Sequence record: PP355768.1
Strand: one strand, 5' to 3'
Length of the DNA: 33,000 nucleotides
Part shown: positions 2,395-32,205 of the stretch, piece after piece
Position numbering within the stretch: position 1 is the stretch's first letter
Layout of the letters: each line of letters starts with the position of its first letter
The notes under the pieces: generated by a model
The model's input: the letters and a program-made list of their open reading frames with translations, nothing else
Told to the model about the DNA's origin: nothing
Databases searched by the model: none
Translations under genes and position numbers: made by a program

Positions 2395-3111
2395 TCAATT
2401 TTCTCTCAATTTAAATTCGTTTATCATAGAACCATACGGCTCATCTGGATAACCATTCTTTACAGCTAACTTATTAAATCTTCTATACCCAACTTTACCA
2501 TTATTTTTCCATAGCAAATACAGCTCTTCGAAAAATTTCCAATTCTCGAGGTGTGCACGTTTAGCTGCCTTAATTCCTGCGATATGCCGTGCCTTTACGT
2601 CACTTCTTGCTAATGCCTTAATTGTATTATTTCTTTGTTTTTCTTTTACTTCTGGACGCTGTTGGGATAACTTAGACGCCATCCCATTACGAGCTTTTAC
2701 TATAGGATTTGATAAAGTTTTCTTCATTGAAGCTGACACTTTATCTCTATGGCCAGGAGTAGCCCAAAGCTTTTTAGCATGATTAGAATTCTTTACGCGA
2801 GTACTTTTATAAACAGTTCCACCTTCACCGCCATCAGATAAATTCATACATAATGAACCATACTTAATTTTACCAGCTTTAATGTATAATGCTTCTGCGT
2901 TAGAAGCAAGTTCATACGTACTAAAGAATTCAAGTTTTCTTACACTAATCTTATATCGTTCAGGATACTTTTTAACATGCCGCATATAATATCCTGAACC
3001 TGAATATGAATCGTTTAATCTATTACTTCTGTGTTTTCCGAAGTAGTGTTTAACTACTCCGGTCTTAAGATTTTCTATCTCAGTGTGATAAATGTAATTA
3101 TATTTTTTCAT
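2395..3111 (-). CDS. Seg-like GIY-YIG homing endonuclease (probable start 3111)
   Basis: MKKYNYIYHTEIENLKTGVVKHYFGKH...YSGSG...CMNLSDGGEGG; basic DNA-binding C-terminus. Confidence 0.82.
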   Translation of the reverse strand: MKKYNYIYHTEIENLKTGVVKHYFGKHRSNRLNDSYSGSGYYMRHVKKYPERYKISVRKLEFFSTYELASNAEALYIKAGKIKYGSLCMNLSDGGEGGTVYKSTRVKNSNHAKKLWATPGHRDKVSASMKKTLSNPIVKARNGMASKLSQQRPEVKEKQRNNTIKALARSDVKARHIAGIKAAKRAHLENWKFFEELYLLWKNNGKVGYRRFNKLAVKNGYPDEPYGSMINEFKLREN

Positions 3112-5844: not shown

Positions 5845-6378
5845 ATGAGAAATGACATAGATTGGAATCAAATTAAATTAGCTATTGATTCTGGATTAAT
5901 AAGTCATACAAACTTTGATGTAACTACTAAGCTAATTGAAAGTGTGGCAATGCTTAAACTCCACAATATTAAAGAATTTGAAAATAAAAAATTATCTAAA
6001 AAGAAAACATTGTGGAATTTGTACTGTCGTACCGCCGCGTTAAACTTGCTAAAATTTAAAGACTGTTTTGACATAAGCAAAAATTACAATCAAGCCTTCA
6101 TTTATATAATGGTTGATACTCGTCATCCAAATTTATATAAGATCGGTCGTTCTATAGAGCCCGATCAGCGAGCAGCAACCGCTAATACATTCTCACCCGG
6201 AAGAACGTATAAAATACTGTCATTTAGATATTCTCAAGAAGCTATTAAGCTGGAAAAGTATTTCCATGATAAATATAAAAATAATTTAGAAGGTGGAGAG
6301 TGGTTTTTCTTTCATGACATTCTCCCAGTTATTAAAGACCTGAATAATAACTGCACTAGATTTAAATTGGCAGAATTA
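5845..6378 (+). CDS. T5orf172/MUG113-type GIY-YIG-superfamily protein (C-terminus cut at a junction near 6378)
   Basis: FIYIMVD...LYKIGRS...QRAATANTFSP...LEKYFH...GEWF motif set; RBS GAGGA; directly after tRNA-Arg. Confidence 0.75.
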
Positions 6379-7527: not shown

Positions 7528-7535
7528 TATAAATA
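7528..7535 (+). promoter_or_regulatory. T4 late promoter TATAAATA for gp13
   Basis: Exact motif, followed by GAGGAG RBS and ATG 7556. Confidence 0.9.
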
Positions 7536-7555
7536 GAATATAAAGAGGAGCTTAT

Positions 7556-8141
7556 ATGTCATACAACACATACAACCCAAAAACGCTTAAAGACGCTATA
7601 CTTCGACGTCTAGGAGCGCCGGTAATTAATGTCGAAGTAACTGAAGACCAAATTTATGATTGTATTCAACGAGCATTAGAGTTGTATGGTGAATACCACT
7701 TTAACGGATTGAATAAAGGCTATCAAGTTTTTTATATTGGAAAAGATGAAGCTGACAACGCAAGATTTTTAAATGGTGTGTTTGATTTGCGTGGTCGTAA
7801 TGTATTTGCTGTCACTCAAATCGTTAGAACAAATGTAGGTTCATTAACTTCAATGGATGGTAATGCTACCTATCCGTGGTTTACTGACTTTTTAATGGGA
7901 ATGGCCGGAATTAATGGCGGAATGGGGTCAAGCTGTAATAAGAGTTATGGACCAAACGCTTTCGGTGCTGACCTGGGCTATTTTACTCAATTAATGACTT
8001 ATTGGTCAATGATGCAGGATTTGCTTGCCCCACTTCCAGACTATTGGTATAACTCTGATAATGAAATGCTTAAAGTAATGGGCAACTTCATGAAGGGAGA
8101 CATCATTGTTTGTGAATGCTGGACTAAATCATTTATGAATA
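7556..8141 (+). CDS. gp13: Neck protein, N-terminal fragment
   Basis: [38 protein letters not shown]...YPWFTDFL, as in T4 gp13; cut after SFMNT. Confidence 0.95.
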
Positions 8142-8157
8142 CATTCTATGGAGACCA
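8141..8157 (+). tRNA. 3' remnant of a tRNA, probably tRNA-Pro
   Basis: ...TTCTATGGAGACCA resembles the T4 tRNA-Pro 3' end; only the acceptor 3' strand is present. Confidence 0.45.
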
Positions 8158-8163
8158 AATTAT

Positions 8164-8307
8164 CGGTATGACACAATACAAGATGGCGTAAGCTGAGTAG
8201 CGGGATTGCAGTCTCGTTCAGATATGCTATCGAGTATGGGTGATATATTAAACACATGGATTCTGCAAAGTCCATGTGACTCGGTTCGAGGCCGGGCATA
8301 CCGTCCA
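8164..8307 (+). ncRNA. tRNA-like stable RNA, T4 species I (rnaC)-like, 144 nt
   Basis: CGGTATG/CATACCG acceptor + T + CCA; T arm CTCGG-TTCGAGG-CCGGG; CGTAAGCTGAGTAGCG...CGTTCAGATATG motif recalled from T4 species I RNA. Confidence 0.75.
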
Positions 8308-8332
8308 ATCACTTGCCATTGAGAATTATATT

Positions 8333-8485
8333 ATGAAATATTACGGCTTCAAAACATCCCATTTCGGGAAAGCATATCGTACAGAAAACATTGATAGACG
8401 TCGAGCATATTACGAATCACTGCATAAAGCAGGACGTTCTCGTGCACGACAAGAAGGCCAAAAACAAGCGAAGGAAATAGAATGA
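8333..8485 (+). CDS. Small basic hypothetical protein of the tRNA region (50 aa)
   Basis: [50 protein letters not shown]. Confidence 0.7.
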   Translation: MKYYGFKTSHFGKAYRTENIDRRRAYYESLHKAGRSRARQEGQKQAKEIE

Positions 8486-20387: not shown

Positions 20388-20802
20388 GTTTGAAGCAGTT
20401 AAAGCTGGTGATGCTCTGACTGTTGGTGATATCGTTGTTCACGATTTCGCACAGACCGGTCGTGCTCATCTGCAGGTTGTTGAAGATTTCACTGTAGACG
20501 CTGGTGCTACCGATGCTGCTAAACTGGACGCTGCAGTTACTGCCGCTCTGGAAGCTGGTAAAGTTGTAGAAATCGCCGAAGGTATGGCTACCTCTATTTG
20601 AAGCAGTTAAAGCTGGTGCTTCTCTGGATGTTGGTGATATCGTAGTTCATGATTTCGCACAGACTGGTCGTGCTCACCTGCAGGTTGTAACAGCCTTTAC
20701 AGTTGATGCTGCTGCTACTGATGCTGCTAAACTGGATGCTGAAGTCACTAAGCGTCTGGAAGCTGGCGAAGTAGTTGAAATCGCCGAAGGTATGGCTACT
20801 TC
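20388..20802 (+). CDS. gp23: Major capsid protein, two tandem allelic fragments (20388-20598, 20598-20802)
   Basis: VGDIVVHDFAQTG...DAAKLDA...VVEIAEGMATS, twice. Confidence 0.92.
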
Positions 20803-21215
20803 CTGATGATATTGCTCAGCCTTGGATGTCACCAGCTGGATATCGTCGTGGTCAGATTTTAAATTGTATCAAACTGGCAATTGAACCGCGTCAGGCACAT
20901 CGTGACCGCATGTACCAAGCAGGTATTAACCCAGTGACTGGTCAAGGTACAGGTGAAGGTTTCATTCTGTTCGGTGATAAGACTGCAACCACTGTTCCAA
21001 CACCGTTTGACCCAACAAGATGATGTTGCTCAACCTTGGATGTCACCGGCTGGTTATCGTCGTGGTCAGATTCTGAACTGCATTAAACTTGCGATTGAAC
21101 CTCGTCAAGCACATCGTGACCGTATGTATCAAGCAGGTATTAACCCGGTAACGGGTCAAGGTACCGGTGATGGTTTCATTCTGTTTGGCGATAAGACTGC
21201 AACTACTGTTCCAAC
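20802..21215 (+). CDS. gp18: Tail sheath, two tandem allelic fragments
   Basis: AQPWMSPAGYRRGQILNCIKLAIEPRQAHRDRMYQAGINPVTG...GFILFGDKTAT, twice. Confidence 0.92.
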
Positions 21216-21239
21216 GGCAGATTTCTGGAATTTCGCTAT

Positions 21240-21420
21240 TTACATTACGCATTTGACTAACTTCTCGTTAAAGGTTTTAATAACTTCACGGCCATGGTCT
21301 GCACCTTTCTTACAGTCTGCAATTGTCCATGCTTCACCGTTTTGGTATTTGTGAAGAGCCCGGGTATTAATATCTTTCACAAGATTCATAATCAAATCAT
21401 TAATTTCTTGTTCAGTCGTT
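21240..21420 (-). CDS. Hypothetical protein, C-terminal fragment
   Basis: TTEQEINDLIMNLVKDINTRAL...EKLVKCVM*. Confidence 0.55.
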
Positions 21421-21436
21421 CAGCGTGTGAGGAGTT

Positions 21437-21616
21437 ATGAAAACCATTCTCGTTAGAATTGACATGTATTTCAATTATTGCGACAGAAATTTAACTGACC
21501 ATGATTTAGAACACGGGTTTGGATTAAATCCTATTCAATTATTCTTGTTGAAAAGTGGTCAACAGATTGTTCTTAAAGAATATACCTTAGAACGAATAGA
21601 TATGAGGAATGTATAA
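21437..21616 (+). CDS. Hypothetical protein (59 aa)
   Basis: GAGGAG RBS; MKTILVRIDMYFNYCDRNL... Confidence 0.7.
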   Translation: MKTILVRIDMYFNYCDRNLTDHDLEHGFGLNPIQLFLLKSGQQIVLKEYTLERIDMRNV

Positions 21617-21623
21617 TGAAAGA

Positions 21624-21818
21624 ATTTGGCACAAGGACGTATTATTCGTACTCAATTGTCATATGACCCGAAGAAACCTATTGTTATTCGTGATCAGTCG
21701 ATTGACCGTAAGCTGGTTAAGCTGTGGGTTGATGGCGCTGAATGGACTAACTGGACAGACAAGTCAATGGTTCATGCTTCATCCATTTCAACGATTTATT
21801 ATATGCGTGAAACTGTCG
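21624..21818 (+). CDS. gp6: gp6 internal fragment
   Basis: LAQGRIIRT...VDGAEWTNWTDKSMVHASSISTIYYMRETV. Confidence 0.92.
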
Positions 21819-22200
21819 AACGCTCATGTGCTAAATCAAATTCTTTGTCGCTCATTGTGCTAACATCTAAATTCATGTATTTTTCAACATGCTCTTCTTC
21901 TAATGCTTTAAAAATTAATCCAAGACGAATTTCCGCGTCTTTGATAGCATTTACTTTACCAATCTTTTCATCGGTATGTGGCTTATATCCTTTGATATCT
22001 TCAATTGCAATTGCGCGTTCATTAGCCAAGTCAAATTCCTTGTCGCTCATTGTACTAACATCTAAGCTCATGTACTTTTCAACATGTTCTTCTTCCAACG
22101 CTTTGAAAATTAATCCAAGACGGACTTCTGCGTCTTTGATAGCATTCACTTTACCAATTTTTTCATTGGTATGTGGCTTGTATCCTTTAATATCTTCAAT
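21818..22200 (-). CDS. acb2: Anti-CBASS Acb2 (T4 Vs.4) homologue, two tandem N-terminal allelic fragments (22006-22200, 21818-22008)
   Basis: IEDIKGYKPHTDEKIGKVNAIKDAEIRLGLIF matches recalled T4 Vs.4 MIEDIKGYKPHTEEKIGKVNAIKDAEVRLGLIF. Confidence 0.85.
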
Positions 22201-22202
22201 TG

Positions 22203-22373
22203 AGCAGGGTTGTTACCTGAAATAGTTATACTAGCATTCCAGACGTTTCTTCCTATCATACTAGACATCATAAATGGTGTTCCCAACCTTAATTTTGCTC
22301 CAGCTGCAATCATTGAAGATTCTCCTGTTACAGCTTTAGCTGAGCTTCCTACATTAGGACCTGTTACTGCCAT
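22203..22373 (-). CDS. gp38: T2/T6-type tail-fibre adhesin, N-terminal fragment
   Basis: MAVTGPNVGSSAKAVTGES...LRLGTPFMMSSMIGR, like MAVxGPWVGSS...PFWMSxMIGR of T-even adhesins. Confidence 0.75.
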
Positions 22374-22378
22374 GATAT

Positions 22379-22555
22379 CAGGTACTCTTCCGGTTAACCG
22401 TGGTGGTACAGGTGCTACTAATGTAGGAGATGCCCGAAACAACCTGGGCCTTAGAACTGCGGCTGTTCGCGATGTTGGTGAATCCAGCGGAAACGTGATG
22501 GAAGTTGGTGCATTTGGTGTCGGTGGTAACGGAAAATCACTGGTAAATATTACGC
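22379..22555 (+). CDS. gp37: Long tail fibre fragment
   Basis: GTLPVNRGGTGAT...DARNNLGLRTAAVRDVGESSGNVMEVGAFG; overlaps the end of 18075-18362; allele at 28790-28905. Confidence 0.7.
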
Positions 22556-22900
22556 TGGATTAAATGCAGATACGAAGCATTAATCAAATATGAGTACTTC
22601 AGTGAGCGTGATATTCAAGAAGTTATTGCTTATCATTCTGGCTGTAAAGTAAGTAAACTGCGTCAAGTTATTCCGTTTACTAATGCTTCAAATGTAGAAG
22701 AGCTAATTACTGATTTTAAACGAATTTATGCAAATTTGTTTAAAATCTAATACAAGTTGCTCTACATTAGTATCAGCGGTTAACGGAGTAACTTGCCGCA
22801 GTTTATTAATTTTACACCCAGAGTGATAAGCAATAATTTCTTGAATATCACGTTCACTAAAGTACTCATATTTGAGTAATGTGTCGTATCGATATTTAAT
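22555..22900. CDS. tRNA-region hypothetical protein, C-terminal alleles (22555-22750 on +, 22750-22900 on -)
   Basis: WIKxRYxxLxKYEYFSERDIQExIAYHSGCK on both strands; continues the gene starting at 8482. Confidence 0.7.
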
Positions 22901-22907
22901 CCAATCT

Positions 22908-22984
22908 CGGGGCATAGCTCAGTGGATAGAAGCAACAGTCTTCTAAACTGTGGGTCGAAGGTTCGAATCCTTCTGCCTCGACCA
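22908..22984 (+). tRNA. tRNA-Arg(TCT), second variant
   Basis: CGGGGCA/TGCCTCG acceptor, ACAGT-CTTCTAA-ACTGT, CCA end. Confidence 0.95.
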
Positions 22985-22988
22985 TTTC

Positions 22989-23073
22989 GCATCGATGGTG
23001 GAACTGGTATACACATAGCACTTAAAATGCTACGCCGCAAGGATTGAGGGTTCGAATCCCTCTCGGTGCACCA
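22989..23073 (+). tRNA. tRNA-Leu(TAA), second variant
   Basis: GCATCGA/TCGGTGC acceptor, TAGCA-CTTAAAA-TGCTA, variable arm, CCA end. Confidence 0.95.
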
Positions 23074-23076
23074 AAT

Positions 23077-23250
23077 TACGTGGTGATGCAAATGGTACTG
23101 TCGATTTGGGCGATGGATATCTTTGGGAATATCTATATGAAATTCCAGCCGACGTATCAATTAACAGATGTACAAATGAATATATCGTAGTTCCTTGGCC
23201 AGAAGAGATTGAAGAATCTCCAGCTCGTTGGGGATTTCAAAACAACTTAA
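23077..23250 (+). CDS. gp8: gp8 internal fragment
   Basis: GDGYLWEYLYEIPADVSINRCTNEYIVVPWPEE. Confidence 0.93.
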
Positions 23251-23560
23251 CCGTATCTAAAGCTAATGGTGGCACATATACAGGTGAAATAAAAATAGCA
23301 TATGGCTCTTCTGGTAAACTGAGCATGGGTCCGTTAAGAGACGTTGGCATTAGAGTTGGTGGTGCTAATGGTGAAGTTCTTGTTATCGGAGGAAATTCAT
23401 CAATCCAATTACGCGCAAACGGGCCTAGGGTTCGTGGCGCTTGGAAAGATAAGAACAGTGCTTCATGGAACGTATTGCTCGATGCGCGTGGGTCTTTATC
23501 AGGAATTTGGGAAACTGGGTTTAATTTAGTTGTCTTTGGATTATCAGAGCCAAGCAAAAC
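23251..23560 (+). CDS. Tail-fibre fragments (VSKANGGTY-type piece, then PRVRGAW piece)
   Basis: Alleles at 25885-26045 (-) and 27390-27535 (+); synonymous changes support the + frame. Confidence 0.55.
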
Positions 23561-23584
23561 GTCTGGTTATAATGACGCAATCTT

Positions 23585-23912
23585 TGAGGTATTTTTCCAG
23601 CTTACGTTTACGGGTATAATCTGCTTTTGAACTGTGCTGACGAATTTCTTCCTGAAGGTGCGAAATACCATGCCCAATCTCACGACGAAGTTCGTCCAGT
23701 TGTTCTACAGTAAGATTACGAAGTTGCTTTTCACTTAAATGCTGAAGCATTTGTCACATAAGCAACTCCGTAATTTGACCATTTCTCAATTAGACGAAAT
23801 TCGACTTGAGGTTGGGCATATTATTTCAGCACTTCGTATTTCTTATAAAGAAACTGATTCTGAAGCGGACTATAAGCGTATGCGTTCTCACGAAAGATAC
23901 CTCGATGCACGT
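23585..23912. CDS. Hypothetical protein, two divergent homologues head-to-head (23585-23750 on -, 23739-23912 on +)
   Basis: MLxHLSxKQLRNLTxxQLDExRxExGH...ADYxRxR. Confidence 0.7.
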
Positions 23913-24075
23913 TCAGAAATTCACAGGTTTATTACGCTATGGATGGAAGAGGTCCTGGTAAATCCGGTACTCTTCTGACGAATGTAGAAAACAACCGTCA
24001 GGCATGGCAATATACTATTTCTGCTGCAACAGCTGGAACTCCACGTTGGGTTAAAGTAGCTACAATGAAACATCC
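23912..24075 (+). CDS. gp37: Long tail fibre fragment
   Basis: [16 protein letters not shown]...RWVKVATM; continues the SNLTFR piece at about 28225. Confidence 0.6.
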
Positions 24076-24238
24076 AAATCCAGAGCCAGCAATAAAAATA
24101 CCTCGTGGAACCAAGTTTTTAGCATATGCGCGGGATTCATCAGTAGACCCATACAACTTTGTTGTTACTGAAAATGTTATTGCGCTAAGAGATACTTCAG
24201 CACCAGAAGGAGTTAATAGGTATCTTCCTATTGTCCAA
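24075..24238 (+). CDS. gp6: gp6 N-terminal-region fragment
   Basis: IPRGTKFLAYARDSSVDPYNFVVTENVIALRD; allele at 26045-26205 (-). Confidence 0.88.
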
Positions 24239-24244
24239 TTCACT

Positions 24245-24560
24245 AAATCCCGGATATAGCTGTTCTGCTATATAATATGCTGATTTTGTATACTCGCCGT
24301 CACCGAAGACATATCGTGATTTCATTAGTATACGCGACATTTTATCTCTAGGATGAAATATGCTAACCCATTTTCCATCGTGAATAAATCGTAGCAATTT
24401 CATTAAATCCTGGACATAACTTTTCTGCCATGTAATACGACGATTTTGCATACTCACTATCACTGAAGACATACCGTGACTTCATTAGTGTACGTGACAA
24501 CTTATCTCGAGGATGAAATATGCTAATCCATCTTCCGTCGCGAACAAATCGTAGTGCAAA
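24245..24560 (-). CDS. Hypothetical protein, two tandem allelic fragments
   Basis: LRFxxDGxWxSIFHPRDKxSRxLMKSRYVF, twice. Confidence 0.65.
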
Positions 24561-24882
24561 TACGCAATGGCCAGTTGCTACAAAAGACGTCCAATCGGCG
24601 TTAGCGTTGATTGGAAGCTGGGCAAGAACTGACACTGGATTACCTGCAGCATCTCCAACCGTAGCAGGTATAATTCGTACAGCTACACAGGCCGAAGTTG
24701 AAGCTGGAACTGTAGGTACTGTAACAAATACACAATGGCCTGTTGCTATAAAAGACGTCCAATCAGCGTTAGAGCTGATTGGTAGCTGGGCAAGAACTGA
24801 TACCGGATTACCTGTAGCATCTCCTACAGTAGCCGGTGTAATTCGCACAGCAACACAGGCTGAAGTTGATGCTGGAACTATT
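24560..24882 (+). CDS. gp12: Short tail fibre, two tandem N-terminal allelic fragments
   Basis: NTQWPVAxKDVQSAL...LPxASPTVAGxIRTATQAEVxAGT (T4 gp12 TNFP..DV.AA...ASSTTKGIL..PTEQEVIDGT). Confidence 0.8.
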
Positions 24883-24884
24883 TC

Positions 24885-25198
24885 AAATTGCTAACAGTTC
24901 CAATCTCAAAGGAGCTATGACCCGTGGAAGAAATTTTGCCCAAGCTGCAATTGATGGCGAAGTCACTAAGCGCCTTGGAATGATTAACGTTTATAAAGCG
25001 TATAAACACCCGAGTTGGAACCAAGTTCAAGCTCAAGTACAAATCGCGGATAACTCTAATCTAAAAGGAGCTATGACCCGCGGAAGAAATTTTGCTCAAG
25101 CAGCTATTGATGGCGAAGTAATGAAGCGTCTTGGTATGACAAATTACGTTAAAGCAGTACGCCATCCAGATTGGAAAACAGTTCAAGCCCAAGTGTGA
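24885..25198 (+). CDS. Hypothetical protein, two tandem C-terminal alleles
   Basis: SNLKGAMTRGRNFAQAAIDGEVxKRLGM, twice. Confidence 0.65.
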
Positions 25199-25530
25199 TG
25201 ATGCTGAGCGTAAAACCGGTGGTATGAACGGTGTCGGTTCTGCGTTAACCAACATCTTTTCAGTATCTTTTACTGGTGCAACATGCGATGGTAAAAATGA
25301 AATCATTGTTCGTTGTTCTAATGGCGCAGAAAATATCTCCTGGGAAGAACATCCAGCAAAAGACAAAGAACACCGATGATGCTGAGCGTAAAACCGGTGG
25401 TATGAACGGTGTTGGTTCTGCATTAACGAATATTTTTTCTGTGACATTTGTGGGTGCAACCTGTGATGGAAAAAATGAAATCGTTGTCCGCTGTTCAAAT
25501 GGCGCAGAGAATGTTTCTTGGGAAGAACAT
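25198..25530 (+). CDS. gp39: Topoisomerase II large subunit, two tandem allelic fragments
   Basis: ERKTGGMNGVGSALTNIFS...VRCSNGAEN (GHKL ATP lid), twice. Confidence 0.92.
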
Positions 25531-25882
25531 CGCTCGTGAAATTGCAGAGTCTCTTGAGAAAGAAGGAATTAACTTAATTACGATCGTCGGAAATCATGAC
25601 ATGCACTACAAGAATACGTTGACGCCTAATGCATCAACCGAAGTTCTTGGTAAGTATAAGCATATTACTGTTATTGAAAAGCCCGTGACTATGGATTTTG
25701 ATGGGACTTTGATTCCCGTTGCTCGTGAAATTGCTGAATCCCTTGAAGGAGAAGGAATTAATTTAATCACTATTGTAGGCAACCATGATATGCACTACAA
25801 GAATACGTTGACACCCAATGCATCAACTGAAATTCTTGGTAAGTATGACCATATCACGGTGATTGATAAACCTACGACTATG
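25528..25882 (+). CDS. gp47: gp47 internal fragment, two tandem alleles
   Basis: ITIVGNHDMHYKNTLTPNA phosphoesterase motif, twice. Confidence 0.92.
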
Positions 25883-25884
25883 CC

Positions 25885-26205
25885 TACCCGCGTAATTGAA
25901 TTGTTGAATTGCCTCCGATGATAAGAACTTCACCATTACTACCGCCGGCTCTAATTCCAACGTTTGCTAATGGACCCATGCTCAGTTTACCAGCGGCGCC
26001 ATAAGCTATTTTTATTTCGCCCGTGTATGTACCGCCGCGGGAAACAATGGGCCAATATTTCTGGTCGTTATCACGAATAGCAACAACGTTTTCAGTAACA
26101 ACGAAGTTATATGGGTTGGCTTTATCGGATTTCGAGTATGCTAAAAATTTAGTCCCTCGCGGAATTACAACTCTCAGTGTGCTGCTTGGGTTCATGGCCG
26201 CGCGC
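25885..26205 (-). CDS. gp6 allele (26045-26205) joined to a tail-fibre allele (25885-26045)
   Basis: IPRGTKFLAYSKSDKANPYNF, then [22 protein letters not shown]. Confidence 0.75.
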
Positions 26206-26495
26206 TGGATAATACCAAATTTGAGTGCGGTCTTGATACTTGTGCTCTTGGGTCCAATCTCCATCTTCTATTAAAACAAAGATTTCTTCTGCATCATCGT
26301 CTGGTGCATTAGGCGGATATTCGAAATCGTAGTTGTCGTCCCAGACCGCGAGCAGGATAATACCAAATTTGAGTACGGTCTTGATACTTATGCTCTTGTG
26401 TCCAGTCTCCATCTTCTACTAAAACAAAGATTTCTTCTGCATCGTCGTCTGGAGCATTTGGCGGATATTCAAAATCATAGTTGTCGTCCCAACGA
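26205..26495 (-). CDS. modA.3-like protein, two tandem allelic fragments
   Basis: EEIFVLxEDGDWTQEHKYQDRTQIWYYP, twice. Confidence 0.6.
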
Positions 26496-26496
26496 C

Positions 26497-26790
26497 ATGA
26501 TGGTAGGTAATACTGCGGGTTACGGCTTCGCTGGTGAACAAACTTCCGACCATTGGGGCTTAGGAGATAGGTATCAGAATCCTAACCTTCGCAATAACGG
26601 CCAATATGCAGGTGAAGGTAATACAAATAGAGAAGGTGCTAGATGCGATGGTAGGCAATACAGCAGGATACGGATTTGCTGGGCCGCAAACTGCTGACCA
26701 TTGGGGATTAGGAGATAGATATCAGAATCCTGACCTTCGTAATAATGGTCAATATGCCGGAGAAGGTAATACAAACAGAGAAGGTGCATC
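26497..26790 (+). CDS. gp13: gp13 middle segment, two tandem alleles
   Basis: MVGNTAGYGFAG...RYQNP...GEGNTNREGA; bridges the 8141 end and the 9066 start. Confidence 0.9.
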
Positions 26791-26792
26791 AA

Positions 26793-27085
26793 CGTTTGTT
26801 AAGCGTTTTCGATATACAACTTTCTCTTTTTGTTTAAACCGCTCATGTGCTTTCTCAACAGAGACCCACAGCTTAGCGGCTTCGGCTGGAGTGATATCTA
26901 ACGCCCTTGCAATTTCTTGAAAATCCTTTCCGTGGTAAAGATTTCCAAGAAATTGCGAGAGCATTAGATATCACTCCAGCAGAAGCTGCTAAATTGTGGG
27001 TCTCAGTTGAGAAAGCACACGAACGGTTTAAGCAAAAAGAAAAAGTCGTTTATCGGAAACGCTTAACAAACGTTGGTATAAAATC
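26793..27085. CDS. srh: Srh-like transcription modulator, two alleles head-to-head
   Basis: GKDFQEIARAL...AKLWV...KEKVVYRKR (recalled T4 Srh REKVVYRKR). Confidence 0.65.
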
Positions 27086-27087
27086 TC

Positions 27088-27240
27088 GTTGGTGGCGGAA
27101 CAGAAGATTCCAGCGGCATAGTTGAAATTGCTAAAAACGGTAACTTAACAGCACAAACCGGTAGAATTACCGCTAACGTATTTACTTCTAAACAACAACC
27201 ATCTGGTGTAGACGATTTAACTCGCAAAGATTATGTTGAT
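27088..27240 (+). CDS. Tail-fibre connector fragment (gp36-like)
   Basis: ...PSGVDDLTRKDYVD. Confidence 0.65.
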
Positions 27241-27395
27241 ATGTACTTGGGTATCGTTTGTCAGATTACCAAGTCCGACGTCAGCCTTAGATGGCTTATT
27301 TGCTGTGCCGTAGAGAACATTAGAATTTACTCTTCCACTTGCTAAACCACTATCGTTTATAGCAAATACTCTGACATTACCAGTTGCGACAGGAC
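27240..27395 (-). CDS. Long tail fibre fragment
   Basis: LYGTANKPSKADVGLGNLTND motif. Confidence 0.7.
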
Positions 27396-27527
27396 CTAAG
27401 GTTCGTGGCGCTTGGATTGATAAGAACAGTGCTTCGTGGAACGTATTACTTGATTCTCGTGGGTCCTTATCAGGTATATGGGAAACAGGCTTTAATTTGG
27501 TTGTTTTTGGGCTAGCAGAGCCTAGTA

Positions 27528-27845
27528 AGCTCAAGGTGATACATTAAAAGGTTCAGCTTCTCCCAAAATTTTCAACACTAACTTCCAAGATTTGGAATTA
27601 GTTTATTGCGCACCTGGCCGCTGGGAATACATTGAAAATAAAACAGTAGACAAGCTAACTAATGGCACCATTAGTTAGCTTATCTACAGTTTTATTTTCA
27701 ATATATTCCCAGCGGCCAGGGGCGCAATAAACCAATTCCAAATCTTGGAAGTTAGTATTGAAAATTTTAGGAGAAGCTGAACCCTTTAATGTATCGCCTT
27801 GAGCAATTGGCGGTACAACATTTAGAGCAAATGTTAAAACCGTAG
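27528..27845. CDS. gp10: gp10 N-terminal region, two alleles (27528-27675 on +, 27670-27845 on -)
   Basis: GDTLKGSASP...FQDLELVYCAPGRWEY; leads into the piece ending at 7525. Confidence 0.92.
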
Positions 27846-28345
27846 ATGACAAGCCTGTGTGGGAAGGCCCAGGGTTTTATTCTCATGGCGCAGGATTCTT
27901 TTCTAGAACTGGCGATACAATGTCTGCGCTTAATATAGATTACACATGGGCGTACTCTTGCCATTTACACTAAAGATGAAGCCGATAACGTTGTTCAGCT
28001 TGCAGGTAAAGGGGTTCCTTTCTTAGATACCTCCGGAACTCTTAGCGTTGATGGAACTACTACATTAAAAGACAACGTACTGGGAACTAATAAGACTGTT
28101 AAAATTAATAGTGGAAGCTCTCTTGTCCTTGAAATGGGCGTAGGTTCTAATGACGCATACATTAAAAACCTGAGAGGAACTGGTGTTCTTCAATTAACCA
28201 ATGACAGTAATCTGACGTTCAGAAAATCTGTAAATTGCTGTCATTAGTTAATTGAAGAACACCAGTGCCTCTTTGGTTTTTAATATAGACGTCGTTAGAG
28301 CCTACACCCATTTCAAGAACAAGAGTGCTTCCACTGTTAATTTTA
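27845..28345. CDS. gp37: gp37 fragments, including an inverted allele pair near 28080-28345
   Basis: GRTLAIYTKDEADNVVQLAGKGVPFLDTSGTL; LVLEMGVGSNDxYIKN on both strands. Confidence 0.75.
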
Positions 28346-28351
28346 ACAGTC

Positions 28352-28905
28352 TTATTGGTAGATAACCCCATTAATAGTTGCTGTACTTGATACAGTCAAA
28401 GCTCTAGAAACTGCTGAGTTTCCATAAACTGTTTGGTTTCCATCTGCGTCAACTTTAAACACATCAGTGTAAGTTTCCGAAGCTGGATTAGCTATGGCGA
28501 TTCCATCAACACTGAGAGTACCAGAAGTATCTAAAAATGGAACACCTTTACCAGCTAACTGTACTACGGCATCATTTTCATCTTTAGTATAAATGGCAAG
28601 AGTACGACCATGTGTGTTCAACGCGATTTCAGTGGTATCACCGAAATCTGGTTTTGCATAACTATCAAAAATCTGTTTCATTGAAACAAGAATGCTTCCA
28701 GATGGTGCAGTAGCACCAGTGTCCTGATTGGTTTCATAGATAATTACTTTACCGCTATCTTGACCGTTGTATCTTGAGTAATATCTACTACTGATTTTCC
28801 GTTACCACCAATACCGAAGGCACCAACTTCCATCACATTTCCGCTAGATTCACCGACATCACGAACAGCTGCAGTACCTAAACCTAAGTTATTTCGAGCG
28901 TCTCC
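28352..28905 (-). CDS. Concatenated long-tail-fibre allelic fragments (gp34/gp37)
   Basis: ASETYTDVFKVDAD; EIALNTHGRTLAIYTKDENDAVVQLAGK; MKQIFDSYAKPDFGD; DARNNLGL. Confidence 0.7.
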
Positions 28906-29165
28906 TCGTTGTTCTGTCCTTTATCGTTGCGGTAGCGCTTGGAATTGTCGCCGTGTTCGGATTCGGAATTTATTTTGCCATTAATGCGATTGATATTATT
29001 CAAACTGATGGCCTTAAATCCTTAGTAGAAACCGTATGTTGTTCTGTCTTTTATCGTTGCGGTAGCGCTGGGAATTGTAGCTATATTCGGGTTCGGAATT
29101 TATTTTGCTATTCAAGCAGTTGATATTATTCAGACCGATGGCCTTAAATCTTTAGTAGAAACCGT
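28905..29165 (+). CDS. Membrane protein (trna.4-like), two tandem alleles
   Basis: FIVAVALGIVAxFGFGIYFAI...IIQTDGLKSLVETV; cf. recalled T4 trna.4 HQNGLKSVVETIW. Confidence 0.6.
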
Positions 29166-29430
29166 GGTCTTCATAAATGTCAACACCAGCTAAAGCCCCA
29201 GTATATTGAGGGTACTGATGATTAAAGTCCCCTTTATCATACCAAATGCCTGAATTTTCAGGATATTGCTCGAGGTTATAATAACGATTGCCGTTTATCT
29301 TCGTAAATGTCAACGCCAGCCAAAGCGCCAGTATATTGAGGATACTGATGATTAAAGTCACCTTTATCATACCAAACACCTGAATTTTCAGGGTACTGTT
29401 CTAGATTGTAATAACGATTGCCGTACGCAT
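29165..29430 (-). CDS. gp53: gp53 fragment, two tandem alleles
   Basis: YYNLEQYPENSGxWYDKGD...YPQYTGALAGVDIYE; continues at 17241. Confidence 0.88.
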
Positions 29431-29439
29431 CCGTACATT

Positions 29440-29695
29440 CACTCAGGCGATTGGCATTTAGGTGTCCGCGCAGATGACCCGTGGGTACAGGATGTACAAC
29501 GACACGGAATTAAGCAGCATATTGATTATGCCAAAAAGCATGGAATTAAAACTATCATTCAATACATACTGAATCCAAGTAGTGATTTCATTTTCTTTTG
29601 AATATTCAATCGCCTGTTGAATTCCATGACGTTGAACGTCTTGAACCCACGGGTCATCGTTGCGGACACCTAAGTGCCAATCGCCAGTATGTAGG
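29440..29695. CDS. gp47: gp47 N-terminus, two alleles (29440-29565 on +, 29568-29695 on -)
   Basis: GDWHLGVRxDDPWVQDVQRHGI on both strands. Confidence 0.9.
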
Positions 29696-30187
29696 GCTAA
29701 TGCTTCCCATACGCTTAAATCATATAAAGGTAATCCTTTGCTTTCTCGCGCGAAGTTAAGAACATCAATGGAACGAATGGGTTCTTCGATAGGAATAACC
29801 TTTGATAATTTTACTGAAATAGACTTGGTGGTACAGTGTTCAGAGCCAACACAGCGAGTGGTTATACTGGGGCTCCTTATTACTCCCATGGCACCGGGTT
29901 TTATGGAAGAGCTTCTGACACAATGGCTGCGCTTAATATAGATTATTCCAGGAGACGCATCTTCGCAACTGGATTTAATGATTACTGGCGGCATTGATTC
30001 CGGACATGGCAAACACTACGTTGATTTTATCACGTTATCTGGTCGCAATTTAACGTCCTGGAGCACTAGGTCTGCATCAACTTTAAACACATCAGTATAA
30101 GTCTCAGAAGCCGGATTACTTATAGCAGTTGCTGACGATTTAGCAACAGTGAATGTTTTTCCTGAAGCAAAGACCAGTTTAGAACCT

Positions 30188-30455
30188 GCACCACGGAACG
30201 GTTTACCAAATAAGGCAAAAGTAATAGCTTCGAGCATAGTACTTTTGCCACCACCATTCTTACCTGTGATTAAGGTCTTTTGGCATTTATCAAGTTGAAT
30301 GTCAATGGCCGCTTGGCCGCTTGGCCAGCCGCTGCGAAATGGTTTTCCAAATAGAGCAAAGGTGATGGCTTCAAGCATAGTACTTTTACCTCCACCATTC
30401 TTGCCCGTGATTAAGGTCTTTTGACATTTATCAAGTTGAATGTCAATAGCCGCCA
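30188..30455 (-). CDS. gp46: gp46 Walker A region, two tandem alleles
   Basis: KTLITGKNGGGKSTMLEAITFALFGKPFR, twice. Confidence 0.93.
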
Positions 30456-30683
30456 TTCGTATTACAAAATGTTTTAGCAATACGAAGTGAATCCGACATT
30501 GAATTTTCAGCATTAACAGAGAATGCCAATACTAATCCAAGAACCGCGGCGTACTTTATCATTATTCCACCTTTAGTTCGTATTGCAAAATGTTTTAGCG
30601 ATACGAAGTGAATCTGTCATTGAATTTTCAGCATTAGCAGAGAATGCCAATACCAATCCAAGAAGCGCGGCGTACTTTACCAT
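30455..30683 (-). CDS. Signal-peptide protein (possibly Vs-like), two tandem N-terminal alleles (starts 30562, 30683)
   Basis: MIKYAAVLGLVLAFSVNAENSMSDSLRIAKTFCNTN. Confidence 0.5.
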
Positions 30684-30694
30684 TATTCCACCTT

Positions 30695-30822
30695 TGTAAT
30701 TGCTCAGCATTCATATACACTTGGTCGGTTTCTGCCATGATATCATCAATATCCATAGTAGTACCGATGTTATTATTGAACCAACGGACGGTAAGAAGGT
30801 CTTTATCTTCAAACGCCGTGTA
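30695..30822 (-). CDS. gp10: gp10 fragment
   Basis: LTVRWFNNNIGT...IMAETDQVY (T4 ITWFNNDLGT...IIDETDNLY). Confidence 0.8.
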
Positions 30823-31060
30823 TTGATGTTCCAAAGGATGGGATGTGTTCAATTGGAAATCTTACAAGCAAAGATGAATGTATTAAGCTTGGAGGTAAAT
30901 GGACACCATCAGCTATTTCAGGTTCAGCTCCTCGTGGTATGTATTGATGTTCCAAAGAATGGAATGTGTTCAATTGGTAATCTTACAAGCAAAGAAGAAT
31001 GTATTAAGCTTGGGGGTAAATGGACACCATCCACTATTTCCGGTTCAGCGCCTCGTGGGA
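30818..31060 (+). CDS. gp8: gp8 fragment, two tandem alleles
   Basis: CIDVPKxGMCSIGNLTSKxECIKLGGKWTPS...SAPRG; continues at 23077. Confidence 0.9.
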
Positions 31061-31297
31061 AGCCAACGTTATCGGTGCTCCAGAAGGTGCAACTGGGGTT
31101 TATTCTTGGACCAAAGACGGTTCACCTGTAGAAGGCTCAACAAGCACGTTAGTGATTGACACATCTGATATAGGGTCTCAGCTGCTGTTACTGGAGCGCC
31201 CGCGGGAGCATCTGTGGCTTACTCATGGACCAAAGACGGTTCTCCTGTAGAAGGTTCTACTAGCACTTTAGTGATTGACACGTCTGATATAGGGTCC
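31060..31297 (+). CDS. hoc: Hoc Ig-like domain, two tandem alleles
   Basis: GAPxGAxxxYSWTKDGSPVEGSTSTLVIDTSDIG, twice. Confidence 0.75.
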
Positions 31298-31404
31298 TAT
31301 AATCTCTAGAGCTGTTAAAATGGAACTGACTTCCATCTTCAATATCAACGCGCCAATTTACATTAAAATTCCCACTGCCTTCTAAAACGATGGCATCATT
31401 ATAA

Positions 31405-31530
31405 CCGTCCCATTCCATGGGCGTACTCTCGCTATCTACACCAAAGATGAAGCTGATAACGTTGTTCAGCTCGCCGGTAAAGGTGTTCCTTTCTTAGATA
31501 CTTCCGGCACTCTTACCGTTAATGGAATTT
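31405..31530 (+). CDS. gp37: gp37 N-terminal region, third allele
   Basis: GRTLAIYTKDEADNVVQLAGKGVPFLDTSGTLTVNG. Confidence 0.8.
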
Positions 31531-31650
31531 AAAGGAAATATGGTCATTGGACCATTTAAACCAGGTGATATTAAAGAGAATACTCATATTCAGCCATATA
31601 CTGAAGACGATTTTGATAGAACTACTAATGGAGAAAGAACTCGTTAAGTT
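31530..31650 (+). CDS. gp6: gp6 fragment
   Basis: KGNMVIGPFKPGDIKENTHIQPYTEDDF; follows the piece ending at 4438. Confidence 0.8.
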
Positions 31651-31651
31651 C

Positions 31652-31870
31652 AGCGATCCAGATGACCAAGCATACGCTGACAGATTAACTCCTATTGAAG
31701 ACTTCCGTCGTCAGAAAGAATTCATGGATTCTTATCTTGATTCCTGTGATTACGACCAAGTTCAGTGACCCAGATGACCAAGCATATGCAGACAGACTGA
31801 CCCCTTCTGAAGATTTCCGCCGTCAACAAGAATTTATGGATTCTTATCTTGACAGTTGTGATTATGATTG
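31652..31870 (+). CDS. Acidic hypothetical protein, two tandem alleles
   Basis: FSDPDDQAYADRLTPxEDFRRQxEFMDSYLDSCDYD, twice. Confidence 0.6.
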
Positions 31871-31871
31871 G

Positions 31872-31978
31872 AAATACAGAATTCTTCTTTGGTGAAGGTG
31901 TGGCAGAAGCATCCGTGGCAGGAGGAGTTCTTGAAAGCAACTTCATTGGTGGATTAAAACCCACTAAAGGCGCGCAAG
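31872..31978 (+). CDS. gp6: gp6 fragment
   Basis: NTEFFFGEG...NFIGGLKPT; follows MRETV at 21818. Confidence 0.85.
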
Positions 31979-32205
31979 TCTAAAGGAATTGAAGACTCAT
32001 ATAAGTTCCTGTTTAAACTTCTTTATAACGAAGACGTCGAAATCGATATTGAGTCAAAGAACACTACCGAATATGACATTATTGTTGAAAGCCAAAGGAA
32101 TTGAAGACTCATACAAGTTCTTGTTTAAACTTCTTTATAATGAAGACGTTGAAATTGACATCGAGTCGAAGAATACGACAGAATATGACATTATTGTAGA
32201 GAGTT
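31978..32205 (+). CDS. gp7: Baseplate wedge initiator, two tandem alleles
   Basis: KGIEDSYKFLFKLLYNEDVEIDIES...EYDIIVES (T4 KGIEASYKFLFKVLYNEEV). Confidence 0.9.

Follow-up and report, generated by a model that had tools for sequence, protein, structure and literature searches.

Stable RNAs of the T4 tRNA cluster and related systems

The species 1 RNA of bacteriophage T4 was sequenced in the 1970s. In GenBank, the T4 genome carries it as rnaC (139 nt) together with rnaD (119 nt), both annotated after segB and tRNA-Arg, and these entries agree with the lengths (about 140 nt for species I and about 120 nt for species II) that the initial annotation of the present locus had given. Both RNAs are late and stable, and their function is unknown (PMC3014915, PMC9697503). 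In the case of T4 rnaC, a discrete stable RNA was seen by northern blot during infection (PMC9697503), and a convergent SNP in the neighboring rnaD was found in a T4-like phage during host adaptation (PMC12685909).

A tRNA acceptor/T-arm module placed on a non-tRNA body is also found in the tRNA-like domain of tmRNA and in bacterial YrlA/Y-RNA-like RNAs. These tRNA-like domains are processed or modified by tRNA enzymes. A different relationship to tRNA is represented by phage tRNAs that act against tRNA-cleaving defenses, such as T5 tRNA-Lys against PARIS (PMC11464382) and phage tRNAs against retron effectors (PMC11555353).

The locus analyzed here lies in a 33-kb stretch of DNA (the window), which is identical to part of PP355768.1 (Klebsiella phage vB_Kpn_AM_K6). 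As judged from sequence and gene order, its 144-nt element (8164-8307, plus strand) is the Jiaodavirus orthologue of T4 rnaC (species 1 RNA), i.e., presumably a stable non-decoding tRNA-like RNA from the tRNA cluster.

Parts and predicted fold of the 144-nt element

The element had initially been described as having an acceptor stem, a CCA end, a T arm and two hairpins whose loops, TTGCAG and CTGCAA, are exact reverse complements. We found all of these parts at the positions given below. Both hairpins do bear such a loop, although the 5' one is in fact a long arm of about 70 nt composed of five helices. The features of the element and its immediate surroundings are as follows.

8142-8157, plus strand: 3' remnant of tRNA-Pro, its last 16 nt ending in CCA (matches to intact genomes start at 8142; the full tRNA-Pro is present in Mineola)
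8158-8163, plus strand: AATTAT, the 6 nt that separate tRNA-Pro from the RNA (T4 rnaC is preceded by an identical spacer, AAUUAU)
8164-8170, plus strand: acceptor stem, 5' strand CGGTATG, paired with 8297-8303 (pairs 3:70 and 6:67 covary among homologues)
8172-8242, plus strand: long arm P2 of five helices (MFE fold; independent folds of 21/22 homologues; compensatory changes in every helix)
8172-8174 with 8240-8242, plus strand: P2 helix 1 (basal), CAC/GTG (MFE fold)
8176-8179 with 8234-8237, plus strand: P2 helix 2, ATAC/GTAT (MFE fold)
8182-8190 with 8223-8231, plus strand: P2 helix 3, GATGGCGTA/TATGCTATC (MFE fold)
8193-8196 with 8218-8221, plus strand: P2 helix 4, CTGA/TCAG (MFE fold)
8197-8199, plus strand: GTA bulge of P2 (MFE fold)
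8200-8205 with 8212-8217, plus strand: P2 helix 5, GCGGGA/TCTCGT (MFE fold)
8206-8211, plus strand: loop L1, TTGCAG, 5' partner in the putative loop-loop helix (6/6 Watson-Crick with 8263-8268; covariation at positions 4 and 5)
8238-8239, plus strand: conserved GG within the basal internal loop of P2, which may imitate G18/G19 of tRNA and dock on the T loop
8243-8252, plus strand: A/U-rich single-stranded linker ATATATTAAA (terminal AAA conserved, two positions in 22/22 and one in 21/22)
8253-8278, plus strand: hairpin P3, 10-bp stem CACATGGATT/AGTCCATGTG capped by L2 (9/10 pairs changed on both sides among homologues)
8263-8268, plus strand: loop L2, CTGCAA, 3' partner in the putative loop-loop helix and complement of L1
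8280-8296, plus strand: T arm, with a 5-bp stem CTCGG (8280-8284)/CCGGG (8292-8296) and the 7-nt loop TTCGAGG (8285-8291) (stem 100% paired; two pairs covary)
8297-8307, plus strand: acceptor stem, 3' strand CATACCG (8297-8303), discriminator T (8304) and encoded CCA (8305-8307), read from the sequence
8334-8485, plus strand: native downstream neighbor, a 50-codon ORF homologous to Mineola gp270, outside the RNA and within the native fragment

The predicted fold is a cloverleaf-like four-way junction, in which P2 takes the D-arm position and P3 the anticodon-arm position. The MFE of the 144 nt is -57.6 kcal/mol (z = -5.2), and none of 200 dinucleotide-preserving shuffles was as stable. CTGCAA is the sole complement of L1 within the element, and the chance that two random 6-mers of the same composition are complementary is about 2e-4.

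When compared with the canonical tRNA family (RF00005), the element shows the 7-bp acceptor stem, the T arm (5-bp stem with the loop UUCGAGG), the discriminator followed by CCA (the NCCA end) and the four-way junction, and its GG could act as G18/G19. Acceptor stem, T arm and U-N-C-A tail all agree with the initial description of the element as a tRNA mimic. Unlike a tRNA, however, the element lacks a normal-sized D arm and an anticodon arm with a 7-nt loop, the loop at the anticodon position very probably being taken by L1; it is also about twice as long as a tRNA and is missed by tRNA models. From tmRNA and YrlA the element differs in topology and in the absence of G3·U70, of a tag reading frame and of a Ro-binding stem. 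A tmRNA reading was considered and rejected: pair 3:70 is G-C, there is no tag frame, and on the element neither ARAGORN called a tmRNA nor Rfam matched one.

An intact element in a patchwork assembly

The source record is 261 kb and its sister PP355766.1 is 288 kb, with relatives of about 166 kb. Within the 33-kb window, the longest ORF has at most 281 codons, tRNA sets are repeated, and normal Jiaodavirus genomes align in short pieces only. Six ordinary tRNAs were called by both ARAGORN and Rfam. From about 20 kb on, and especially at 20389-32203, the window contains adjacent imperfect direct and inverted duplicates (77-93%), and some of the inverted arms are just 2 nt apart. The duplicates look like the signature of error-prone chimeric reads, and PP355768.1 itself like a chimeric patchwork assembly.

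One assembly junction is located near the RNA element, at about 8141/8142, and matches to intact Jiaodavirus genomes begin at window position 8142. In Roth17, window 7528-8141 corresponds to the neck-protein gene (91.0-91.7 kb, plus strand), and the RNA element maps to 68.2 kb on the minus strand, so that the sequences meeting at the junction lie 23 kb from each other there and on opposite strands. The native fragment around the element extends from 8142 to about 8651, and the 144-nt element is intact in the window and 100% identical to the copy of phage KMI11. By these matches, the flanking context of the element in the window, including the upstream part, is an assembly artefact and the element is not. 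The idea that the whole element is an artefact was thus rejected, and the artefact is limited to the flanks.

Because of this junction, just 16 nt of tRNA-Pro are left in the window, and ARAGORN made no tRNA call at the remnant (8142-8157). The junction also makes an artificial fusion of the annotated 211-codon CDS at 7556-8191 (plus strand), which joins a fragment of the neck-protein gene to 16 nt from the 3' end of tRNA-Pro and 28 nt from the 5' end of the RNA.

Relationship to T4 rnaC and occurrence of the family

T4 rnaC (NC_000866 70908-71046) resembles the element in its place in the tRNA cluster downstream of segB, in its acceptor stem, long arm, 10-bp hairpin and T arm, and in having the blocks CGUAAGCYGAGUAGCG and CGUUCRGAUAUG, U73 and complementary 6-nt loops. 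It contains CGTAAGCCGAGTAGCG, CGTTCGGATATG and the loops TTGACG/CGTCAA; both the shared blocks and the differing loop pair had been given correctly when the locus was first annotated. An alignment of the element with T4 rnaC is anchored by CGTAAGCYGAGTAGCG, CGTTCRGATATG and the T arm. On the other hand, little sequence is shared outside the T arm and the conserved blocks, and the two RNAs differ in loops (UUGACG/CGUCAA in T4 versus UUGCAG/CUGCAA), in the acceptor stem (two U·U mismatches in T4 versus full pairing), at the 3' end (ACA in T4 versus encoded CCA), in length (139-140 nt in T4 versus 144 nt) and in that rnaD adjoins T4 rnaC, whereas none is found beside the element.

Because blastn gave no link between the Jiaodavirus-type and T4-type copies, covariance models were built. 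The models R1 and R2 had the window in their seed, and their scores for the window are therefore circular. Model R3 was made from 21 copies of T4, Teguna, Moon, Gelderland and Karam type only, with zero Jiaodavirus sequences. When searched against the 33-kb window, it matched 8164-8307 end to end over all 140 positions (83.6 bits, E ~1e-18), and there was no second match anywhere in the window. Gene order was compared in intact genomes. In Mineola, segB is followed by tRNA-Pro, a 6-nt spacer, the element and small ORFs; Metamorpho similarly has tRNA-Pro, 6 nt and then the element; and in T4, segB is followed by tRNA-Arg, rnaD and rnaC. The element accordingly occupies, in intact Jiaodavirus genomes, a same-strand place in the tRNA cluster directly after a tRNA. 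The proposal that the locus is a homologue of rnaC/species I was thus borne out by the alignment, by synteny in intact genomes and by the Jiaodavirus-free model.

Rfam 15 contained no family that reached the gathering score on the element, and at E up to 10 the one match was a chance opposite-strand hit to ctRNA (17 bits versus a threshold of 45). The element is therefore a divergent new copy of the known but uncurated T4 rnaC family, which is absent from Rfam 15.

Homologues were found in Tequatrovirus, Mosigvirus (RB69), Dhakavirus, Gaprivervirus, Karamvirus, Moonvirus, Gelderlandvirus, Tegunavirus and Jiaodavirus. By blastn, 748 records had the T4 type, 138 the Jiaodavirus type and 6 the TG1 type, and a TG1-seeded search returned the same record set as the T4 query. 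The family is retained in about 890 of about 1,490 T4-like phage records with a gp3 match. When the tRNA regions of more distant T4-like phages were searched with a covariance model (E up to 1, default filters), no match was obtained in the two Acinetobacter phages Acj61 and Lazarus or in Proteus Bragavirus, Serratia Muldoon, Slopekvirus M1, a Pseudotevenvirus or Mosigvirus ESCO47. In IMG/VR, the pattern CGAGGA...GGYTCGAATCC gave 120 loci, with no homologue and only tRNA-driven scores of at most 21 bits among the 99 that were searched with the model; narrower patterns yielded further T4-type and TG1-type copies and no other type. A metagenome scan produced 102 chance matches, unrelated on inspection, and no model match in the 100 loci searched. 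From the genomes covered, the family looks confined to enterobacterial Tevenvirinae, with the reservation that divergent copies could escape the model.

A common four-helix layout

For analysis of covariation, we used 22 distinct homologues from about nine Tevenvirinae genera in a structure-guided alignment. This alignment replaced a first MAFFT/RNAalifold structure, which was dropped as it misaligned the base of P2 and contained a spurious 3-bp hairpin. Folded independently, 21 of the 22 homologues gave one four-helix layout, consisting of a 7-bp acceptor stem, P2 with L1, a linker, 10-bp P3 with L2, one A, the T arm, the acceptor 3' strand, U73 and N-C-A. Across the family, P2 has five helices, internal loops, a GUA bulge and the 6-nt L1 at its tip, and the P2-P3 linker is 8-10 nt long, A/U-rich and ends in a conserved AAA. 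The element of the window has this family fold throughout (acceptor stem, multi-helix long arm, 10-bp hairpin, T arm and complementary 6-nt loops).

In this alignment, 93.9% of the cells were paired, versus 80.2% after column shuffles and 35-42% when the partners were slid by 1-3 columns, and 26 pairs showed changes on both sides. In the basal helix of P2, for example, all three pairs are exchanged, with AGG/CCU in the T4 type and CAC/GUG in the element. At the 3' end, U73 and the final CA are invariant (22/22) and position 74 is C, A or U, so that T4-type copies end in UACA, TG1 copies in UUCA and Jiaodavirus copies in UCCA; CCA is encoded in Jiaodavirus only. The T4-type acceptor stem has two conserved U·U mismatches, at pairs 4:69 and 5:68, in 18/22 distinct sequences, whereas the Jiaodavirus and TG1 stems are fully paired at both. 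The copies with these mismatches are those of T4 (L003 2907-3046) and 17 other distinct T4-type copies.

A further variation was observed in Gelderlandvirus and some Moonvirus copies (L017 1429-1568, L018 1406-1548, L252 5145-5286), in which the interior of P2 is replaced and the GUAAGC...GAGUAG block is missing. Despite the altered interior, these rewritten copies keep the UUGACG L1 hairpin, and they still have the basal helix, GG, P3 and the T arm. Both types of P2 interior are present within Moonvirus.

Probable pairing between L1 and L2

Lack of loop covariation among homologues had been named in the initial annotation as an outcome that would refute the predicted loop-loop contact. Instead, the six L1-L2 pairs are all Watson-Crick in 22/22 distinct sequences. 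Individual pairs and the resulting loop variants are as follows.

Loop pair 1: U-A, invariant
Loop pair 2: U-A, invariant
Loop pair 3: G-C, invariant
Loop pair 4: A-U in 19 sequences, C-G in 3
Loop pair 5: C-G in 18 sequences, A-U in 3, U-A in 1
Loop pair 6: G-C, invariant
T4 and most genera: L1 UUGACG, L2 CGUCAA
Jiaodavirus: L1 UUGCAG, L2 CUGCAA
Tegunavirus: L1 UUGAUG, L2 CAUCAA

Compensatory changes occur at two of the six loop pairs and generate three loop-pair variants, so that the covariation rests on about three independent events, the other four pairs never varying and being uninformative either way. The pairing gains further support from polymorphisms in six additional copies, which affect stems and the T loop but leave L1 and L2 untouched, and from the Gelderlandvirus and Moonvirus copies with an altered P2 interior, in which the UUGACG hairpin is retained. 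A nearest-neighbor calculation for the hexamer duplex gave -4 to -6 kcal/mol. By a rough, non-phylogenetic estimate, loops that evolve independently would arrive at matching bases with a chance of about 1/135 in the Jiaodavirus lineage and about 1/18 in the TG1 lineage. These data suggest that L1 and L2 very probably pair with each other. The searchable literature, outside of which are the sequencing and processing papers of the 1970s-80s and the 2003 T4 genome review, contains no description of such a covariation-backed loop-loop helix or of the cloverleaf reading.

A candidate elbow contact

The GG at 8238-8239 is also highly conserved: its first G is present in 20/22 and its second in 22/22 distinct sequences, and C56 of the T loop is, like the second G, invariant. 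A C in place of the first G occurs solely in the lineage of L004 (5958-6098), L014 and L263, and in this lineage the T loop reads UGCAUGC versus UUCGAAU, with a U to G change at position 55 plus other alterations. It may be that GG docks on the T loop as in the elbow of tRNA (G18:psi55 and G19:C56), which, coming from a single lineage, is a lead only.

Ends and processing

The acceptor/T-arm minihelix is recognized by RNase P, by the CCA-adding enzyme and by T-loop modification enzymes. The element begins 6 nt after tRNA-Pro, a spacing that fits release by RNase P, and a cut by this enzyme is expected after 8163. The element would be co-transcribed with the neighboring tRNAs, RNase P would free its 5' end at C8164, and the 3' end would be trimmed to the encoded CCA, since the acceptor stem and the T arm form a standard tRNA minihelix. 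We infer, in this way, that tRNA enzymes process the element. It should be noted that tRNA-like end processing is not guaranteed family-wide because the T4 type has two U·U mismatches and ACA.

The motif CACTTGCC comes right after the RNA both in Jiaodavirus (window 8308-8325) and in T4 (L003 ~2880-2906, minus strand), the flanks being otherwise unrelated. This motif could be a processing or termination signal.

Possible roles of the RNA

The explanation that we find probable, if far from certain, is that the element is an rnaC orthologue which undergoes tRNA-type processing, adopts a cloverleaf-like fold closed by L1-L2 and serves as a non-decoding tRNA mimic. The long bent arm at the D-arm position would carry the tRNA-like GG near its base and L1 at its tip, and the 10-bp hairpin at the anticodon-arm position would bear L2. 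The 6-bp L1-L2 helix would then join both arms into a compact closed shape with no free anticodon-like loop. Such an RNA would show the acceptor/T-arm/elbow face of tRNA without the ability to decode. No aminoacylation identity elements are evident in the element (C1-G72, G3-C70, U73 and no anticodon). The initial annotation had put forward, purely as possibilities, a decoy for tRNA-targeting nucleases and a ligand of a synthetase or the ribosome; the analysis gave no support for aminoacylation. A point against the favored explanation is that T4 phages which have lost the entire tRNA region can still grow on laboratory hosts.

With regard to function, our best guess, and a tentative one, is that the RNA occupies or titrates a host or phage protein that reads the acceptor/elbow face, such as a processing, repair or defense factor. 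We also considered that the rnaC family might act as a tRNA decoy, in which the equivalent of the anticodon arm is locked by the kissing loop (or multimers form via the loops) and which neutralizes a host tRNA-directed factor (a defense nuclease or a processing or repair enzyme). The idea of a decoy against defense is attractive because phage tRNA clusters counter tRNA-cleaving defenses, and the tRNA-shaped element, like the anti-defense phage tRNAs, comes from such a cluster; however, those are decoding tRNAs that replace a cleaved host tRNA, and the element cannot decode. We regard the decoy as rather doubtful. If true, it would explain the retention of the family in about 890 of about 1,490 T4-like records with a gp3 match.

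The contact between the loops could also be made between molecules, with reciprocal kissing loops that give a dimer or a larger functional assembly. The covariation fits intermolecular and intramolecular pairing equally. Furthermore, both Jiaodavirus loops contain the palindrome UGCA, and P2 (about 26 bp plus internal loops) is about 2.5 times as long as the 10-bp P3, so that an intramolecular contact needs the long arm to bend back sharply. The T4-type loops, however, are not palindromic, and a geometric estimate indicates that the linker of 8-10 nt, the bulge and the internal loops provide slack, so that a closed intramolecular triangle is possible. We consider an intermolecular contact unlikely, though it deserves attention, and the topology adopted in the favored explanation, that of an intramolecular L1-L2 contact, is one that we infer. 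Less likely still is a purely cis-acting role within the tRNA operon, in which the element would be a structured spacer that guides processing or shields the precursor from exonucleases and has no role once released. The element invariably neighbors tRNAs encoded on its own strand, spacers elsewhere in these clusters are likewise conserved and structured, and the T4 operon transcript is thought to end just past rnaC (PMC2330249). Yet its position in the cluster varies among genera, at the end in T4, within the cluster in Karam- and Gelderlandvirus and before ORFs in Jiaodavirus; its loops, GG and linker AAA are invariant or nearly so; and in T4 the RNA builds up in stable form (PMC9697503).

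Two further readings have hardly any probability left. The acceptor stem, T arm and CCA end might suggest a real decoding tRNA, either intron-bearing or oddly shaped, but neither ARAGORN nor Rfam (even at E up to 10) called a tRNA on the element, and it has no 7-nt anticodon loop, the 6-nt loop at the anticodon-arm position very probably being paired with L1; the absent calls and the absent loop effectively refute this reading. As for a protein-coding region, ORFs do exist (7556-8191 on the plus strand, 8129-8308 and 8160-8312 on the minus strand), and CDSs for hypothetical proteins overlap the element in several GenBank records. However, the ORF at 7556-8191 was created by the junction, the substitutions among homologues are compensatory in RNA stems and the T4 orthologue is an RNA gene, and the coding reading was rejected on these grounds. 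A CDS for a 'hypothetical protein' corresponding to window 8129-8312 (minus strand) lies over the RNA gene in many Jiaodavirus records (Roth, 15882 and others); it is probably spurious, since the substitution pattern is of the RNA type.

Other RNAs in the tRNA clusters

Several other regions of these clusters were noted. In Mineola (L001), the inter-tRNA spacers at 1766-1926 and 2084-2179, and also 1437-1689, are conserved across genera and have stable folds; none of them occurs in the window. The Asp-Met spacer (161 nt) has a 10-bp closing stem and shares 83% identity with L004 and 76% with Karamvirus, and the Gln-His spacer (96 nt) shares 86% identity with L009 and L142. These conserved Jiaodavirus spacers may be further stable RNAs. 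In Mosigvirus ESCO47 (L140 3871-3985), there is a homologue of rnaD (species 2) that is 86% identical to T4, and the rnaC model finds nothing. Because ESCO47 has rnaD with no detected rnaC and Jiaodavirus has rnaC with no rnaD, the two RNAs occur independently.

An unannotated stretch in the tRNA cluster of Serratia phage Muldoon (L147 5153-5446, minus strand) has an acceptor-like CCAGAUG...CAUCUGG-U-CCCA around a long insert, and L050 gave a weak 136-nt model match (6025-6160, 17 bits). Both stretches may be unrelated tRNA-like RNAs.

Significance

The divergent Jiaodavirus copy reveals the conserved core of the family, namely the acceptor/T-arm module, a possible elbow contact and a putative six-bp loop-loop helix, the last of which appears to have been maintained through at least three compensatory changes. 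The alignment can serve as a seed for this family, for which Rfam has no entry, and the CDS annotated across the RNA in many Klebsiella phage records can be flagged as probably spurious. T4 species 1 RNA has been known for about 50 years without a known job, and the element sharpens this old question rather than representing a new kind of element: the positions of the loops and of GG are precise experimental handles on the structure, and thereby on the function, of this RNA.
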